Source: Paramicrosporidium saccamoebae KSL3 (lineage: Eukaryota > Fungi > Cryptomycota). From it: a stretch of 5,239 nt of DNA. Below, one piece after another: positions 1 to 5,239 of this stretch. The notes beneath the pieces are model-generated. The model saw only the letters and a list, made by a program, of their open reading frames with translations, searched no databases and was not told where the DNA came from. Location: NCBI GenBank assembly GCA_002794465.1, contig MTSL01000056.1, forward strand, positions 1 through 5,239, written 5' to 3'. Position 1 is the stretch's first letter. The number at the start of each line of letters is the position of its first letter. The position numbers were made by a program, and so were the translations under genes.

Positions 1-1931
1 GATGCGGTGGATGTACTTAATGCAGTGGATGTAGTAGATATCGCCGTCTCAGAGCTCCCACTACTTGACTCTTGTACTGAGGATACAGTGGATGTAATGG
101 ATAGCGCTGTTTCAGAGCTCATACTGCTTGATTCCTGTTCCGAGGATGAGTCCGATGCACGAGATGTACTGGACACATCGGATTCAGTCGAGGTAGTGGA
201 GGGAATCTCTTCAGAGGTACTGACGTTTACTGGATCAATCGTCAAAGTGGTGGATGGCGTAGTAGTTTGTGCCACAGAGCTGCTATGACTTGATGACGGA
301 TTGGAAGTAGTAGGCGTCGTCTCAGGAGTAGTAGGCGGTGTAGTAGTGGGAGTAGTCGTAAATGTAGTAGATGCTCCTGCAGAGCTACTACTGCTCGTTG
401 ATGGATCGGAAGAAGTAGTAGGCGTTGTCATGGGAGTGGTAGTAGATGCCCCTTCAGAGCTACTACTGTTCGATGACGAAATAGTGGTAGTAGGCGTCGT
501 CATAGGAGTAGTGGTCGGAGTAGTCGTTGATGTGGTAGGTGCTTCTCCAGAGGTACTACTATTTGACGGTGGATCTGAAGAAGTAGTAGGTGTTGTTACA
601 GGAGTGGTAGAAGGTGTAGTAGACGGCACTACTGAAGAACTACCACTGCTTGATGGCTGATCCGAAGACGTAGTAGGTGTTGTGATTGGTGTAGTAGTCG
701 ATGTAGTAGCAGGAGTGGTAGTCAATGTAGTAGTAAGAGTGGTAATCGTTACGGTGGAACTACCATCGCTCAATGACTGTGAGGAGGAAGTAGTCGGAGT
801 AGTGATGGGAGTCGTCGTCGGTGTGGTAGCGGGAGTGGTAGTCAATGTAGTAATAGCGGTGGTAGGTGCTACACTGGAACTACCATCACTCGATGACTGT
901 GATGGCGAGGTAGTCGGTGTAGTGGTAGCCGGAGTGGTGGTAAGAGTCACAGTAGAGCTACCGCCGCTTGATGACTGTAATGACGAAGTAGTCGGAGTAG
1001 TGATGGGAGTTGTCGTCAGTGTGGTGAGGGGAGTAGTCGTCGGTGTGGTGATGGGAGTAGTCGTCGGTGTGGTGGTGGGAGTAGTCGTTATTGTGGTGGT
1101 AGGAGTGGTAGTCGGTGTAGTGGTGGGAGTGGTAGTCAATGTAGTAGAAGTGGTAGGTGTTGCACTGGAACTATCATCGTTCGATGACTGTGATGAAGAA
1201 GTAGGTGTAGTAACCGGCGTAGTGGTGAGAGCGGTAGTAGGGGTTACAGTAGGACTACCACTGCCTGATGACTGTAATGACGAAGTAGTCGGAGTAGTAA
1301 TCGGCGTGGTGGTGGGCGTAGTGGCTGGAGTGGTACTAGACGTCCCACTAGGACTACCACCGCTCGAAGGCTGCGATGACATAGTAGTCGGGGTAGTGAT
1401 GGGAGTAGTAATTGGTGTAGTAGTGGGCGTTGTTGTAGGCGTGGTAGTTTGTGCAGTAGTGGCTGGAGTGGTACTAGGCGTCACACTAGGACTACCACTG
1501 CCTGAAGACTGTGATGACGTAGTAGTCGGTGTAGTGATGGGAGTGGTCCTCGGTGTAGTAGTGGGGGTTGAAGTAGGTGGGGTAGTTCGCACAGTAGTGG
1601 TTGGAGTGGTACTAGGTGTTACATTAGGACTGCCACTGCTTGAAGACTGTGATGCTAAAGTAGTGGGAGTCGTCGTCGCCGGTGTAGTGGATAGCACAGC
1701 CTGGGGAGCACTGCTGCTTGAGGACGGAGTGACGACAGCTAAATGATTGTCCAGGATCAGCTCAACCAGATCTACAACCGGGCCGATAATATTCTCCATT
1801 GTTCGTGGTCCAGCATCCCTCAAAGTTTGCTCTTCGCGTGACACCTTGCCATTGCCTCGAGAGCTCTGCACCTGGCGTCCCTCGATAGGGATGGCAGCCA
1901 GCAAAAGTAGCAAGATAGAAATAAAGCGCAT
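1..1931 (-). CDS. Secreted Thr/Pro/Ser-rich mucin-like (probably O-glycosylated) surface or wall protein, 3'-partial (>643 aa)
   Basis: Manual translation: ATG at 1931-1929, with an in-frame TGA just upstream (1940-1938) and no stop down to the window edge. It begins MRFISILLLLLAAIPIEG-RQVQSSRGNGKVSREEQTLRDAGPRTMENIIGPVVDLVELILDNHLAVVTPSSSSAPQAVLSTTPATTTPTT, continues as (TTP)n/SSQSSSGSS repeats, and ends in-window with SSETAISTTSTALSTSTA. There is a hydrophobic signal peptide and a TATAAA 53 nt upstream. Not in the ORF track. Confidence 0.92.
   Translation of the reverse strand, partial: MRFISILLLLLAAIPIEGRQVQSSRGNGKVSREEQTLRDAGPRTMENIIGPVVDLVELILDNHLAVVTPSSSSSAPQAVLSTTPATTTPTTLASQSSSSGSPNVTPSTTPTTTVRTTPPTSTPTTTPRTTPITTPTTTSSQSSGSGSPSVTPSTTPATTAQTTTPTTTPTTTPITTPITTPTTMSSQPSSGGSPSGTSSTTPATTPTTTPITTPTTSSLQSSGSGSPTVTPTTALTTTPVTTPTSSSQSSNDDSSSATPTTSTTLTTTPTTTPTTTPTTTITTTPTTTPTTTPITTPTTTPLTTLTTTPITTPTTSSLQSSSGGSSTVTLTTTPATTTPTTSPSQSSSDGSSSVAPTTAITTLTTTPATTPTTTPITTPTTSSSQSLSDGSSTVTITTLTTTLTTTPATTSTTTPITTPTTSSDQPSSSGSSSVVPSTTPSTTPVTTPTTSSDPPSNSSTSGEAPTTSTTTPTTTPMTTPTTTISSSNSSSSEGASTTTPMTTPTTSSDPSTSSSSSAGASTTFTTTPTTTPPTTPETTPTTSNPSSSHSSSVAQTTTPSTTLTIDPVNVSTSEEIPSTTSTESDVSSTSRASDSSSEQESSSMSSETALSITSTVSSVQESSSGSSETAISTTSTALSTSTA
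23..142 (-). repeat. Second coding repeat class, 63-bp (21-aa) unit, two copies: QESSSxSSETAxSxTST
   Basis: cagtggatgta occurs at 23 and 86, and tcagagctc at 49 and 112. Translation: QESSSMSSETALSITSTVSSV / QESSSGSSETAISTTSTALST. Confidence 0.8.
250..1700 (-). repeat. Degenerate coding tandem repeat, about 13 units of (TTP)n Thr/Pro tract plus Ser-rich linker (TTSSxQSSSGSSSV-like)
   Basis: The anchor gactgt or a variant recurs at about 1645, 1507, 1369, 1270, 1186, 973, 895, 775, 655, 565, 475, 400 and 295. Spacings (138, 138, 99, 84, 213, 78, 120, 120, 90, 90, 75, 105) are all multiples of 3. Confidence 0.85.
1878..1931 (-). other. Predicted signal peptide of the mucin-like protein (aa 1-18)
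   Basis: MRFISILLLLLAAIPIEG has a basic n-region, a Leu-rich h-region and a small residue (G) at the likely -1 position. The cleavage site was estimated by eye. Confidence 0.85.
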
Positions 1932-2359: not shown

Positions 2360-3340
2360 TTAGTGGGTTTCGTGTTCAGCAAGAAAGTGCTCACAGTCAA
2401 GGGCAGCCATACATCCAGTACCGGCTGCAGTGATGGCCTGTCGATAACGCTTATCTTGCACATCGCCGGCCGCAAATACACCAGGAACACTAGTAACAGT
2501 GGTGCCGGGCTGAGTTAAAACATATCCAGTCTCGTCCGTCTTCAACTGATTGCTAAGGAACTTTGTGTTGGGCTCGTGTCCAATTGCAAAGAACAATCCA
2601 CCGGCCTCCATGATCCGTGTCTCGCCAGTCTTCAAGTCCTTGACGTGACAATTGGTAAGAATTTTGCCATCGCCATCGGCCTTTTCAACTACGTGTGAGT
2701 AAAGAAATTCAATCTTGGGATTGTTCTTGGCACGCTCCTGCATAACCTTGGAGGCTCGCAGCTCGTCTCGGCGGTGGACAATATACACTTTGGAAGCAAA
2801 CTTTGTCAAATATGTGGCCTCCTCCATGGCAGAGTCACCACCACCAATTACAAAGAGAAACTTGTCGCGAAAGATTGGCAGTGCTCCGTCACACACTGCA
2901 CAGGCACTCACCCCGCGTTGCCAGTACTCATTCTCTCCAGTTCCGGGAATCTTCATGCGCTTTGCGGTAGCACCGGTAGCAATGATCAGAGTCTCAGCCT
3001 TCATTGCGCCAACAGACGAATTCACCGTAAAGGGACGTTCAGAGAGGTCAACTGAATCAACCGTCTCTGAGATAATGGTAGTGCCACATCGGACGCTCTG
3101 AGCCCGACATCTATCCATAAGCTCTGGTCCCATGACACCATCAGGGAAGCCAGGAAAGTTCTCTACATCAGTAGTAGTGGTAAGTTGTCCTCCAGCTGCC
3201 ACTCCACCGGCCAAGAAGCCCTCAAAGAGCACAGGACGGAGATTGGCACGGGCAGCGTATATGGCGGCGGTGTGAGCTGCGGGACCACTGCCAATAATAA
3301 CGACAGGATGGATAGTGGGCACGTTGTTTTCAAGGGCCAT
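2360..3340 (-). CDS. TRR1: NADPH-dependent thioredoxin reductase, low-molecular-weight (fungal/plant NTR type), 326 aa
   Basis: FAD motif [22 protein letters not shown], redox-active CAVC (C147/C150, nt 2891-2902) followed by [13 protein letters not shown] motif [19 protein letters not shown], and [24 protein letters not shown]. It is colinear with yeast Trr1 as I recall that sequence. Kozak context ACC-ATG-G; no introns evident. Confidence 0.97.
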
Positions 3341-3425
3341 GGTACTGAAGGGAGTAGAGAGAAATGCAACTCGGGGTGCAAATTTGAAGAGACTGCGACG
3401 GAAAATCGAAGCCAGCTTATGGCAA

Positions 3426-3433
3426 TTTATATA
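3426..3433 (-). promoter_or_regulatory. Candidate TATA box of TRR1
   Basis: TATATAAA on the minus strand, about 85 nt upstream of the ATG. Confidence 0.55.
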
Positions 3434-3436
3434 ATC

Positions 3437-3460
3437 TTAGCTCTTCATATAGGAGGCCAT
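3437..3460 (-). other. Short upstream ORF (MASYMKS*) in frame with TRR1
   Basis: ATG GCC TCC TAT ATG AAG AGC TAA. The ATG is 120 nt upstream of the TRR1 ATG and in the same frame. Transcription of this segment is not shown. Confidence 0.35.
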
Positions 3461-3470
3461 GGGCTAAGGC

Positions 3471-3613
3471 CCTCAATAAATGGTCTACCATGGCTACACA
3501 ATGGGCACAAGTCCCCAGTAAATGGTCCATCACGGATGCAGTTCCCTAATAAAGGATCTTTATTACAAATATCACGAGTATATCTACGGATCAAAGGCCC
3601 CAATAAATAGTCC
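3471..3613. repeat. Three dispersed copies of the 16-mer CCYCARTAAATRGTCY
   Basis: CCTCAATAAATGGTCT (3471-3486), CCCCAGTAAATGGTCC (3513-3528) and CCCCAATAAATAGTCC (3598-3613). Confidence 0.7.
3547..3565. terminator. Inverted repeat carrying AATAAA on both strands; candidate poly(A) signal for the 3626 gene
   Basis: TAATAAAG-GAT-CTTTATTA (8-bp arms). The minus-strand AATAAA at 3559-3564 lies about 60 nt after the stop at 3626. Confidence 0.45.
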
Positions 3614-3625
3614 TTGCCACATACC

Positions 3626-5239
3626 TTACACTACTATTAAGCAAAGCATGACAAAGAGGGGAATGCATAATAGTGCCAATGGATTCGGGCCAGCCAACGC
3701 AAAGGACGCTTGTTTCTGAACAGGCACGCAGTGCTGCTCATAATCTGCCTTGGCAGCTCCCTTCAATTTTTTTATGTGTGCTTTCTGAATACCGACACAC
3801 GGGTGCATCTTGATAGAATCGGGCCATGTCCGTCCCAAATCTCCAAAATGCCGAAACTCTCCAAAGTAATCAGAAGGCAAAGCCTCCACTTGCAATTTCC
3901 CAATGTTGTGTCGCCAGGCATCGACCGAGATTTGCTGGAACTGCGGGTAGGAAAGCTCGGAAAAATTCTCGACTCGGATGAGGCCAAGACATTCTCCCGA
4001 AAGCTTGGCGATGGGCAGGGAGGGTATTTGGGTAGTCGTAAAGCCCGAGCAGGTAGACCCATTCACACCAACAGAAAACTGCTCCCACTGCTTATCTGTG
4101 ATGGCAGCAATTGCTTTGGTGGATAGAGCGGTAGCTTGCCGACTCTGGAGTTTCTTAAATGCATGGCTGGGGAACAACTCGATCTGGGCGGGAGTCCAAG
4201 ACTGGACCACTGATGGATTTAATTGGGAGTAGCACTCTGCTGACAGTAGTGTCAACTGTGCATAATCCAACTCGGAGAAGGACTTTGCTGTATGATTTGC
4301 ACAACTCTGACCATGCAGAATCTTGCTCTTTTGGTGCTCAACTTGAACATCGAGCCGGTGTTTTTGCTCGAGATCCAACTTTCCGTAGGCCGAGCTGGGT
4401 ATCAGGGACACTTCATGTTTGGTCAGCTTGTCAAAATGAGGAAGAGCCGAAAAACATTCAGCACTCATTCCCCGCCAGAACTCGTTCGCCTTATTTCTTC
4501 CAGTGTGCACCTCAATGTCCTGCCATTGCAGAGAGGCACAGGGATGGACGCCACCCCGAACATTTGCCGAGAGCTGCCGCCACTGTTGGAAACTCAGCAA
4601 ATCGCCATACTGTCCAATCCAGGAGCTCTTTCCGAGTTGGACGTCGGTAAATTCGGCAAGCGCATCCTCCCTAAGCTTCATTCCGTTACGCAGTCCTTCT
4701 ATAAATGTTGCAACTGGTATCGCCGCTAAAAGATTAGGCCTCAGTAAAACAGATGCGCCGCTTTGTGCAATTGCAAGCATCTGATCAGGCAGCATTTGCT
4801 GCACCGCCTCAGTTTTTAAATGCGTCATCTGCCTATCACTAATGCCAAGCAATGCATCAGCAGGGATCATTGAAAATCGCTCCGGGGTGATTACGTGTTC
4901 CAGAATCTCATCGTGCATTTTCCTGATGGCACCCTGCGGCATATCCTCATAGCTTTTCGGATCCAACAATCCAAAGCACTGTGGGGGCATTTTTGGATAA
5001 GAAGTAACCGTTTGCTGGCCAATCTGGCCCCATGAAACGTAGACGCTGCGGCATGGATGGACTATCTCGTCATCCACGGCCGTACCAAATACTTCCATCT
5101 GACGCGGTGACATTTTCTCCAATATTGAAGCCATCACCTCATCGTTACCTTCTTTATCTCGCGAAGAGGCAGTAATTTTCTTGAATATTTCAGGCTTTAA
5201 CCGCCCCATCCCATCGCGTGAGATGCCCATCAGGGATAC
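3626..5239 (-). CDS. Probable GPI-anchored surface protein with 8-residue helical repeats and paired cysteines, 5'-partial (>537 aa)
   Basis: The frame is open to the window edge (V-S-L precede the Met at 5230) and there is no signal peptide at that Met, so the true start is probably upstream. Octad periodicity, five Cys pairs, sequons NHT, NGS and NFS, and a C-terminal small residue-spacer-hydrophobic tail (QASFALAGPNPLALLCIPLFVMLCLIVV*) ending at TAA 3628-3626. Confidence 0.85.
   Translation of the reverse strand, partial: VSLMGISRDGMGRLKPEIFKKITASSRDKEGNDEVMASILEKMSPRQMEVFGTAVDDEIVHPCRSVYVSWGQIGQQTVTSYPKMPPQCFGLLDPKSYEDMPQGAIRKMHDEILEHVITPERFSMIPADALLGISDRQMTHLKTEAVQQMLPDQMLAIAQSGASVLLRPNLLAAIPVATFIEGLRNGMKLREDALAEFTDVQLGKSSWIGQYGDLLSFQQWRQLSANVRGGVHPCASLQWQDIEVHTGRNKANEFWRGMSAECFSALPHFDKLTKHEVSLIPSSAYGKLDLEQKHRLDVQVEHQKSKILHGQSCANHTAKSFSELDYAQLTLLSAECYSQLNPSVVQSWTPAQIELFPSHAFKKLQSRQATALSTKAIAAITDKQWEQFSVGVNGSTCSGFTTTQIPSLPIAKLSGECLGLIRVENFSELSYPQFQQISVDAWRHNIGKLQVEALPSDYFGEFRHFGDLGRTWPDSIKMHPCVGIQKAHIKKLKGAAKADYEQHCVPVQKQASFALAGPNPLALLCIPLFVMLCLIVV
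3629..3709 (-). other. Predicted GPI-attachment signal (omega site near A508/S509 of the 534-aa ORF)
   Basis: Small residues A-S, a spacer of about 8-9 aa, then 17 uncharged, largely hydrophobic residues reaching the stop with no cytosolic tail. Confidence 0.65.

Follow-up and report, generated by a model that had tools for sequence, protein, structure and literature searches.

The 5239-nt window examined here is a whole contig of the amoeba-parasitic fungus Paramicrosporidium saccamoebae, with the gene model PJF19501.1, and it carries a thioredoxin reductase (TRR) gene whose reading frame stays open upstream of its ATG. Our analysis suggests that the cytosolic and the mitochondrial form of the enzyme probably both come from this gene, the latter by means of a presequence that starts at a CUG codon. 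Translation of the extension from this conserved CUG is the part of the proposal that we consider very likely. Mitochondrial targeting and dual localisation, which we infer from the properties of the extension, are probable. L-numbers denote loci of environmental relatives, and the 11 lineages compared are P. saccamoebae and 10 further distinct TRR loci.

The TRR body lies at positions 2360..3337 of the reverse strand, as do all TRR features below, and its open reading frame (ORF) of 326 aa including Met ends at a TAA stop (2362-2360). The product is a low-molecular-mass (low-Mr) NADPH thioredoxin reductase of the TrxB type, or fungal and plant NADPH-dependent thioredoxin reductase (NTR) type. 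It matches Pfam Pyr_redox_2 (E = 5.7e-51, residues 37-334 of the long form) and the barley, Arabidopsis and yeast enzymes in the PDB (2whd, 1vdc, 3itj and 3d8x; E ~1e-125 to 1e-130, residues 11-322). The translation shows GSGPAA (the GxGxxA FAD motif), the redox-active CxxC as CAVC, located in the NADPH domain, and GGGDSA with HRRDELRAS (the NADPH motif, HRRxxxR). The fold is that of a full-length pyridine nucleotide-disulphide oxidoreductase of about 320 aa without a C-terminal Sec/Cys extension. An exact look-up of the 326-aa product found no database record, and among the best 120 of 8000 protein-search matches no second TRR of P. saccamoebae was found, the sole entry from this species there being the TRR gene itself.

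An in-frame TAA (3437..3439) closes the TRR frame seven codons upstream of a CTG (3413..3415), the proposed non-AUG start of the long isoform; the codons between them encode DYINCHK. Between the CTG and the ATG of the short, presumably cytosolic isoform (3338..3340, context agtaccATGg) lie 24 codons of presequence-like composition (3341..3412), and these 72 nt contain no ATG in any frame. The first-pass annotation of this DNA had described 32 open codons without Met upstream of the TRR ATG, a stretch of 25 codons beginning at the CTG (3415-3413) that encodes four basic residues and no acidic ones, and a strong CTG context. Each of these statements was correct: the 32 codons include no in-frame ATG, GTG or TTG, the basic residues are R, R, K and R with no Asp or Glu, and the context cataagCTGg has A at -3 and G at +4.

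The evidence that carries the proposal comes from relatives. A protein search returned a tight environmental group (74-95% aa identity), placed before many myxobacterial TrxB proteins (~74-75%); the DNA of twelve environmental sequences was retrieved and the frame upstream of each TRR ATG was read. At the 10 further distinct TRR loci (74-95% aa identity) the kept ATG is preceded by an in-frame extension of 24-40 codons that is free of stops, acidic residues and ATG. The extension comprises 25 residues up to the canonical Met in L001, and before the canonical Met it reads LASIFRRLSSRTLPVVSFSIPFRRN in L003/4/5, LASFGRRLFPCSRLFSLASLVSSSSASLPLLAKRQ in L087, LSFIRRALFRFGPRPFISTAAIATAGATVHSATYP in L088 (shortened, LSFIRRALFRFGPRPF...), LASLFSKVFRISRISAAIPLSLNSNNRSFTTRTTQN in L089 (shortened, LASLFSKVFRISRISAAIP...) and TTSSFAGWKKFLTGRVSRISLPFIFNHQRRQSFSSPHLST in L094 (shortened, TTSSFAGWKKFLTGRVSRISLPF...); at these loci an in-frame stop lies further upstream. 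In L086 (LASIFRRGILQLAPRAALFSTTRN), L090 (LASIFRRLSQTGLPRIALASTSSGYFFSSPGTQR), L091 (LAPFSRRLLAFFPRLLPLVSLSSSASSLSSRRR) and L002 (MSLFNNLLNHGTKSTFRLLASRAAILFTTQHQRT) the in-frame stop is just 2-4 codons upstream of the start, and the residues between stop and start are RFII, FV, NFVI and FI, respectively. The open extensions of the ten relatives are visibly homologous or analogous to that of P. saccamoebae. Stops or frameshifts in close relatives had been named beforehand as an outcome that would speak against the extension, and the opposite was found, with ten lineages keeping it in frame, stop-free and acid-free.

Similarity among the lineages starts precisely at the CTG, and the residues preceding it are unrelated between lineages. 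Codons 2-7, encoding ASIFRR, differ synonymously (GCT/GCG/GCA; TCG/TCA/TCC; ATT/ATA/ATC; TTC/TTT; CGT/CGA/CGC/CGG). Between P. saccamoebae and L003 the nucleotide identity is 39% over 75 nt, with 8 synonymous codon differences, and LASIFRR is unchanged. The upstream start and the ATG are 24, 25, 33, 34, 35, 36 or 40 codons apart, seven distances that all preserve the frame; several indels have occurred in the extensions, every one a multiple of three. The 346 extension residues of the 11 lineages include 50 Lys or Arg, no Asp or Glu and no stop, and there is no ATG in any frame. Stops are frequent in the other frames, and the same-frame stretch of equal length directly upstream of the start contains stops in 11/11 lineages. 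Joint shuffle probabilities, calculated over ten independent lineages with the near-duplicate L001 left out, were ~1.6e-4 for no stop, ~1.6e-4 for no Asp or Glu and ~10^-11.5 for no stop, no Asp or Glu and no ATG together; for the lack of ATG between the two starts the joint P was ~4e-4. Taken as comparative evidence, these data show that the extension is under protein-coding constraint across the whole clade, and that this constraint begins at the CUG.

The start position itself carries CTG in nine lineages, ATG in one (L002) and ACG-ACG in one (L094). Codon 1 is CTG in 9/9 lineages that have Leu there, with no synonymous variation; CTG accounts for 16% of Leu codons in the TRR coding sequences (CDSs) and for 1/39 of the other Leu codons inside the extensions. 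A purine stands at -3 of the CTG in 9/9 cases and G at +4 in 8/9. The start position thus tolerates only AUG-like codons, one step from AUG. The proposal of the first-pass annotation, a translated extension started at the CTG, gains support from conservation that starts at this codon, from synonymous changes after it and from the restriction to AUG-like start codons. The locus shows several of the features used to recognise near-cognate dual-start ("DualNCC") genes: an in-frame CTG in favourable context, no stop before the ATG, no intervening AUG, and conservation of both extension and start. L087 (861-899) has, 12 codons before the conserved CTG, an ATG in the same frame whose context is weak (C at both -3 and +4), and in that lineage the weak AUG may be used in addition to, or instead of, the CUG.

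The public gene model offers another route to the same peptide. PJF19501.1 ("Thioredoxin reductase [Paramicrosporidium saccamoebae]", 895 aa) consists of three pieces joined over two predicted introns, namely an upstream 534-aa ORF, a 19-residue mini-exon and LASIFRR...TRR, and its second intron ends at an AG directly before the CTG. This model already translates the extension, as part of a fusion, and it raises the possibility that the extension is coding but reached by splicing, with the upstream mini-exon supplying an ATG. In the model, ...HCVAM (ATG|GTAGAC near 3490) is joined to the AG acceptor directly before the CTG, and P. saccamoebae does have ...ataAG|CTG with ATG|GT about 74 nt upstream. 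The acceptor, however, is not conserved (AAA in L001, GGG in L003), and L087, L091 and L002 have no AG at all between in-frame stop and start, which rules out the splicing of an upstream ATG exon to the extension in these three. GTAGAC makes a weak donor, and around it no alignment with L001 is possible. The upstream ORF is a separate conserved gene with its own stop in P. saccamoebae and L001, and L089 has an upstream neighbour in the opposite orientation. A spliced ATG is therefore very improbable. On the same comparison, the 895-aa PJF19501.1 is an artefactual fusion of two genes, because the upstream ORF is a separate conserved gene, the L089 neighbour is on the other strand and the splice sites lack conservation. 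In all the metagenome gene calls, TRR begins at its ATG, without the extension.

The canonical Met is kept in 11/11 lineages while neighbouring residues vary, and its context is mostly good, which fits its use as a second start. The absence of ATG from all frames between the two starts is what leaky scanning needs. In the mechanism that we propose, a minority of scanning 40S subunits would initiate with Met-tRNAi at the strong-context CUG (3415-3413), giving a 351-aa precursor whose first 25 residues are positively charged, acid-free and rich in Ser, Thr, Phe, Leu and Arg. This presequence would direct TRR into the mitochondrion and would then be removed there. The other 40S subunits would pass the 72 AUG-free nt and initiate at the strong-context AUG (3340), giving the 326-aa cytosolic enzyme. 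For this scheme we infer that the initiating near-cognate codon is the CUG and not some other, that leaky scanning and not a pair of transcripts yields the two isoforms, and that the precursor goes to the mitochondrial matrix, with cleavage of the presequence.

All eleven extensions are 24-40 residues long, with a net charge of +3 to +6 and 17-31% Ser plus Thr; the AUG-form N-termini have a net charge of -1. Overall, the extensions contain 14% Lys or Arg and about 25% Ser or Thr. A phi-x-x-phi-phi (TOM20-type) pattern was seen in all lineages, the motif being a permissive one. Arg is found at -2 from the canonical Met in L003, L086, L087, L091 and L002, as would be expected for cleavage by the mitochondrial processing peptidase (MPP). 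In a purely descriptive sense, the composition of the extension is that of a mitochondrial presequence. A reading as signal peptide was rejected, since the longest uninterrupted hydrophobic run is <=5 and there is no hydrophobic core >5, which also speaks against a membrane anchor, and a reading as peroxisomal targeting signal type 2 (PTS2) was rejected for lack of an R/K-L-x5-H/Q-L pattern. The mitochondrial genome of P. saccamoebae, a rozellid and sister to Microsporidia, is canonical, and the organism's oxidative phosphorylation is complete (PMC5701793). This makes a mitochondrial thioredoxin system plausible, and the mitosomal destination that the first-pass annotation had allowed for is not needed.

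Several observations, given in this and the next two paragraphs, weigh against the interpretation of the extension as a CUG-started mitochondrial presequence. The P. saccamoebae extension by itself is not beyond chance, and its significance arises only through comparison with relatives. A frame open over 32 codons has a chance probability of (61/64)^32, ~0.22, and mononucleotide shuffles of the 75 nt gave P = 0.53 for no stop, 0.58 for no Asp or Glu, 0.55 for no ATG in any frame and 0.16 for all three jointly. The differences between P. saccamoebae and L001, counted by codon position, are 1/3/4 in the extension and 12/6/120 in the CDS, which is not codon-like. Third positions differ at 4/25 codons in the extension versus 120/326 in the CDS, and first and second positions are less conserved than in the CDS. 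This suggests an added nucleotide-level constraint around the start, besides coding; the distance between P. saccamoebae and L001 is too short to separate nucleotide-level from coding constraint. A more distant relative, L092/L093 (76% identity, GC-rich), has a long open upstream frame, but the motif is missing and acidic residues are present, so that the extension has a clade boundary. The chance-level statistics of P. saccamoebae alone (P ~0.16) and the nucleotide-level, not codon-like conservation with L001 would suit an untranslated leader, in which the frame is open by chance and conservation stems from promoter elements, elements of the 5' untranslated region or RNA structure. Such a leader is hardly credible in the light of the wider comparison: the nucleotides diverge in distant lineages (39% identity with L003 over 75 nt) while LASIFRR is kept by synonymous changes, the indels are always multiples of 3, stops are frequent in the other frames and just upstream, and no consensus RNA structure and no fold beating shuffles was found. 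RNA structure was also rejected as a candidate in its own right, single-sequence folds being no more stable than shuffles (z -1.3 to +1.9) and RNAalifold giving no consensus pair around the CTG. A Kozak-type downstream hairpin was unsupported, as there is only a small, non-conserved local stem starting at +3.

The region directly upstream adds a second objection. A TATAAA lies 16 nt upstream of the CTG (3431-3426) and is conserved in L001, and the TATAAA of the neighbouring mucin-like gene lies 58 nt upstream of that gene's own ATG. The usual spacing from TATA to the transcription start site (TSS) is 25-35 nt; if it holds here, transcripts from the TATAAA would start inside the extension, without the CUG. 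The choice of isoform might then be made by transcription start, with a long mRNA that includes the CUG and a short mRNA that starts inside the extension and yields the AUG form only. Alternative TSS use is a classical route to dual targeting, as in yeast HTS1 and VAS1. We nevertheless consider two transcripts unlikely. None of the 11 lineages has an ATG in any of the three frames between the starts (joint shuffle P ~4e-4), an absence that a pure TSS switch does not require, and TATA-like elements have no fixed position in the other lineages. Moreover, the leader driven by TATAAATTG might instead be very short and contain the CUG, in the microsporidian style (PMC2803860).

The extension's character as a matrix presequence is open to a third set of objections. 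The 11-residue helical hydrophobic moment of the extensions is 0.52-0.79, and its z-scores against shuffles are modest (-0.5 to +1.9). Neither position -2 nor position -3 from the canonical Met is Arg in P. saccamoebae; there, as in L001, the nearest Arg is at -11, and RVA|FLSTPFST|M only approximates an R-10/Oct1 pattern. The extension could be translated without being a matrix presequence, as a signal for the intermembrane space or a membrane surface, as a regulatory or degron N-terminus, or as part of a long form that is the sole product. The modest amphipathicity leaves room for such a role, and the non-AUG extension of yeast Gpx3 sends its protein to the intermembrane space (PMC5368413). 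Against this stand the complete absence of acidic residues among 346, the 14% Lys or Arg, the ~25% Ser or Thr and the lack of a core >5, which fit a presequence and not a signal peptide or membrane anchor, and the Arg at -2 in five lineages, which fits MPP processing. The canonical ATG, kept in 11/11 lineages and usually in good context, argues for a second start and not for the long form as sole product. On balance, a destination or role other than that of a matrix presequence seems improbable, and the matrix presequence remains our preferred reading.

A 19-nt GATTATATAAATTGCCATAAG-type block (3416..3434) adjoins the CTG and contains the TATAAA (3431-3426) and an AAATTG (3428-3423). In L001 (95% identity; 2713-2731) 17/19 positions of this block are conserved, and nothing is alignable farther upstream. 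The block is probably a core-promoter or short-leader element. An AT-rich (A/T)AATTG(C/T)C-like motif, noted within this block in P. saccamoebae and L001, occurs 7-22 nt upstream of the start in L001, L088, L094 and L003 and resembles the microsporidian AAATTT-like signal. In Microsporidia, AAATTT-like or A-rich signals lie 10-20 nt from the start codon, and leaders are <7 nt (PMC2803860). If the CUG sat on a very short leader, the shortness alone would favour leakiness. In a tentative and rather doubtful extension of this idea, a clade of Paramicrosporidium-like rozellids would have a single TRR whose mitochondrial isoform obligatorily starts at a fixed CUG, kept past synonymous-site saturation. 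It would use a microsporidian-style ultra-short leader (TATAAATTG-type element 8-16 nt upstream), and the ratio of cytosolic to mitochondrial enzyme would be set by near-cognate decoding and cap-proximal leakiness.

Other elements were noted between the upstream gene and TRR. A 20-40-nt unit, GACCATTTAYTGRGGRC-like when read along the gene strand, occurs three times within positions 3459-3612, at spacings of ~42 and 85 nt, and the copies could be repeated promoter elements; the unit was not found in the aligned region of L001. A TAAAGATCCTTTATT motif is common to P. saccamoebae (~3551-3565) and L001 (~2388-2402), shortly downstream of the stop of the upstream gene, and L086 has ATAAAGATTTAT twice; this motif is probably a polyadenylation or termination signal. 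A scan of the window for bacterial-type promoters and terminators gave nothing, and such a scan is not applicable to a eukaryote.

The 534-aa ORF upstream of TRR (3626-5230, reverse strand) has no Pfam match, and its C-terminal tail is hydrophobic. Its identity is 74% to the last 534 residues of a 767-aa ORF beside the L001 TRR, with the same end position and own stops, and 38% to part of a 1045-aa ORF upstream of the L003 TRR, the alignment covering residues 31-501. Since the homologous ORFs are larger, the 534-aa ORF is truncated at its 5' end by the end of the contig. On the other side of TRR, a secreted-looking, mucin-like gene (1-1931, reverse strand, ATG 1931-1929) runs off the contig start. 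Its product begins with MRFISILLLLLAAIPIEG, which resembles a signal peptide, and continues with long tandem repeats rich in Ser, Thr and Pro (TTPTTTPITTPTT..., periods of 24-138 nt). The gene has a TATAAA at 1989-1984 and is likely to encode a surface or spore-wall glycoprotein of the parasite.

The relatives share synteny around TRR (L003 12349-12732, L089 4454-5077, L092 4317-5444 and L087 3893-5984), with the order large unknown ORF, TRR, HAD hydrolase on the opposite strand, SF1/BBP and WAPL. In P. saccamoebae the mucin-like gene stands downstream of TRR in place of the HAD hydrolase. A scan of metagenome contigs yielded TrxB loci of bacteria only, with <=67% identity, and missed all the close relatives. 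Next after the rozellid-like clade, the best 120 of 8000 protein-search matches include TrxB of Kofleriaceae (Myxococcota), ~74-75% identical to TRR. This is unusually high for a eukaryotic TRR and a bacterial TrxB, and it suggests gene transfer, in either direction, for the fungal/plant-type NTR lineage.

The principle that we propose is not new, since non-AUG mitochondrial isoforms, including that of yeast Trr1, have already been described. In Saccharomyces cerevisiae the dedicated mitochondrial paralogue TRR2 is a low-Mr thioredoxin reductase with an N-terminal presequence, encoded by a separate gene with an AUG start, and the Trr1 extension is a cryptic minor pool beside it. In Monteuuis et al. 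(2019, PMC6582344) yeast Trr1 is listed genome-wide among non-AUG N-terminally extended proteins ("MT-NTE") that gain a mitochondrial targeting sequence (MTS), and it was found in mitochondrial fractions. The P. saccamoebae gene resembles it in belonging to the same enzyme family and in having an upstream in-frame near-cognate codon predicted to add an MTS. It differs from yeast Trr1 in that extension and CUG are conserved across the whole clade, which implies a selected function.

The yeast precedents named in the first-pass annotation also hold: ALA1 (ACG-ACG) and GRS1 (UUG) are, by the accounts cited in PMC5368413 (Chang & Wang 2004) and PMC7049704, classical non-AUG mitochondrial isoforms. 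Fungal tRNA synthetases, including the "DualAUG/DualNCC" cases of Cryptococcus and Neurospora, repeatedly swap weak AUG and near-cognate starts (Wallace et al. 2020, PMC7049704). As in ALA1, GRS1 and the DualNCC synthetases, a single gene here combines an upstream weak or near-cognate start, a predicted MTS and a strong in-frame AUG reached by presumed leaky scanning, and the occurrence of CTG in nine lineages and of ATG and ACG-ACG in one each recalls the interchange of AUG and near-cognate starts between species in the DualNCC synthetases. Unlike those synthetases, TRR is a redox enzyme, and its dual start is a prediction from sequence. Yeast Gpx3, which acquires a mitochondrial form through a non-AUG 18-residue extension (Kritsiligkou et al. 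2017, PMC5368413), is likewise a thiol-redox enzyme with a short non-AUG-started extension for mitochondrial targeting, predicted in our case. Gpx3 goes to the intermembrane space, whereas the matrix destination of TRR is assumed from composition.

Single genes that encode N-terminally different isoforms are known for other thioredoxin reductases. The Plasmodium falciparum enzyme is dually targeted by alternative AUG initiation (PMC3009606), Drosophila Trxr-1 encodes both variants from one gene (in a reference given in PMC3009606), and mouse TXNRD3/TGR uses a CUG start, as reported by Gerashchenko (2010) in the citation of PMC9352919. These three share with P. saccamoebae TRR the use of one gene for isoforms that differ at the N-terminus, and mouse TGR, as cited, shares the CUG. 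They are high-Mr enzymes, unlike P. saccamoebae TRR; Plasmodium and Drosophila use AUGs or alternative exons, and the portion of the source that deals with mouse TGR does not describe its CUG isoforms as a route to mitochondria. No relevant paper came up in a literature search for Paramicrosporidium together with thioredoxin reductase. The eLife 2017 genome paper of P. saccamoebae mentions a transcriptome, and no mention of thioredoxin, TRR or introns was found in it or its supplements.

Among these cases, that of P. saccamoebae is comparatively well supported. The finding corrects the deposited gene models on two counts: PJF19501.1, a two-gene fusion, attaches the extension to the adjacent gene, and the metagenome calls, which start at the ATG, leave the extension out. 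As a comparative example of a conserved CUG start at which CTG, ATG and ACG interchange, the case is unusually clean. It also explains how a single gene could suffice for a mitochondrial TRR supply in an early-diverging, respiring fungal parasite whose genome is compact. Leaders and initiation factors of the Rozellomycota-Microsporidia lineage are known to be atypical, and the clade lends itself readily to tests of start-codon stringency there. If the CUG has indeed been fixed on an ultra-short leader, the TRR locus would report naturally on how stringently start codons are chosen in the lineage from which Microsporidia arose.

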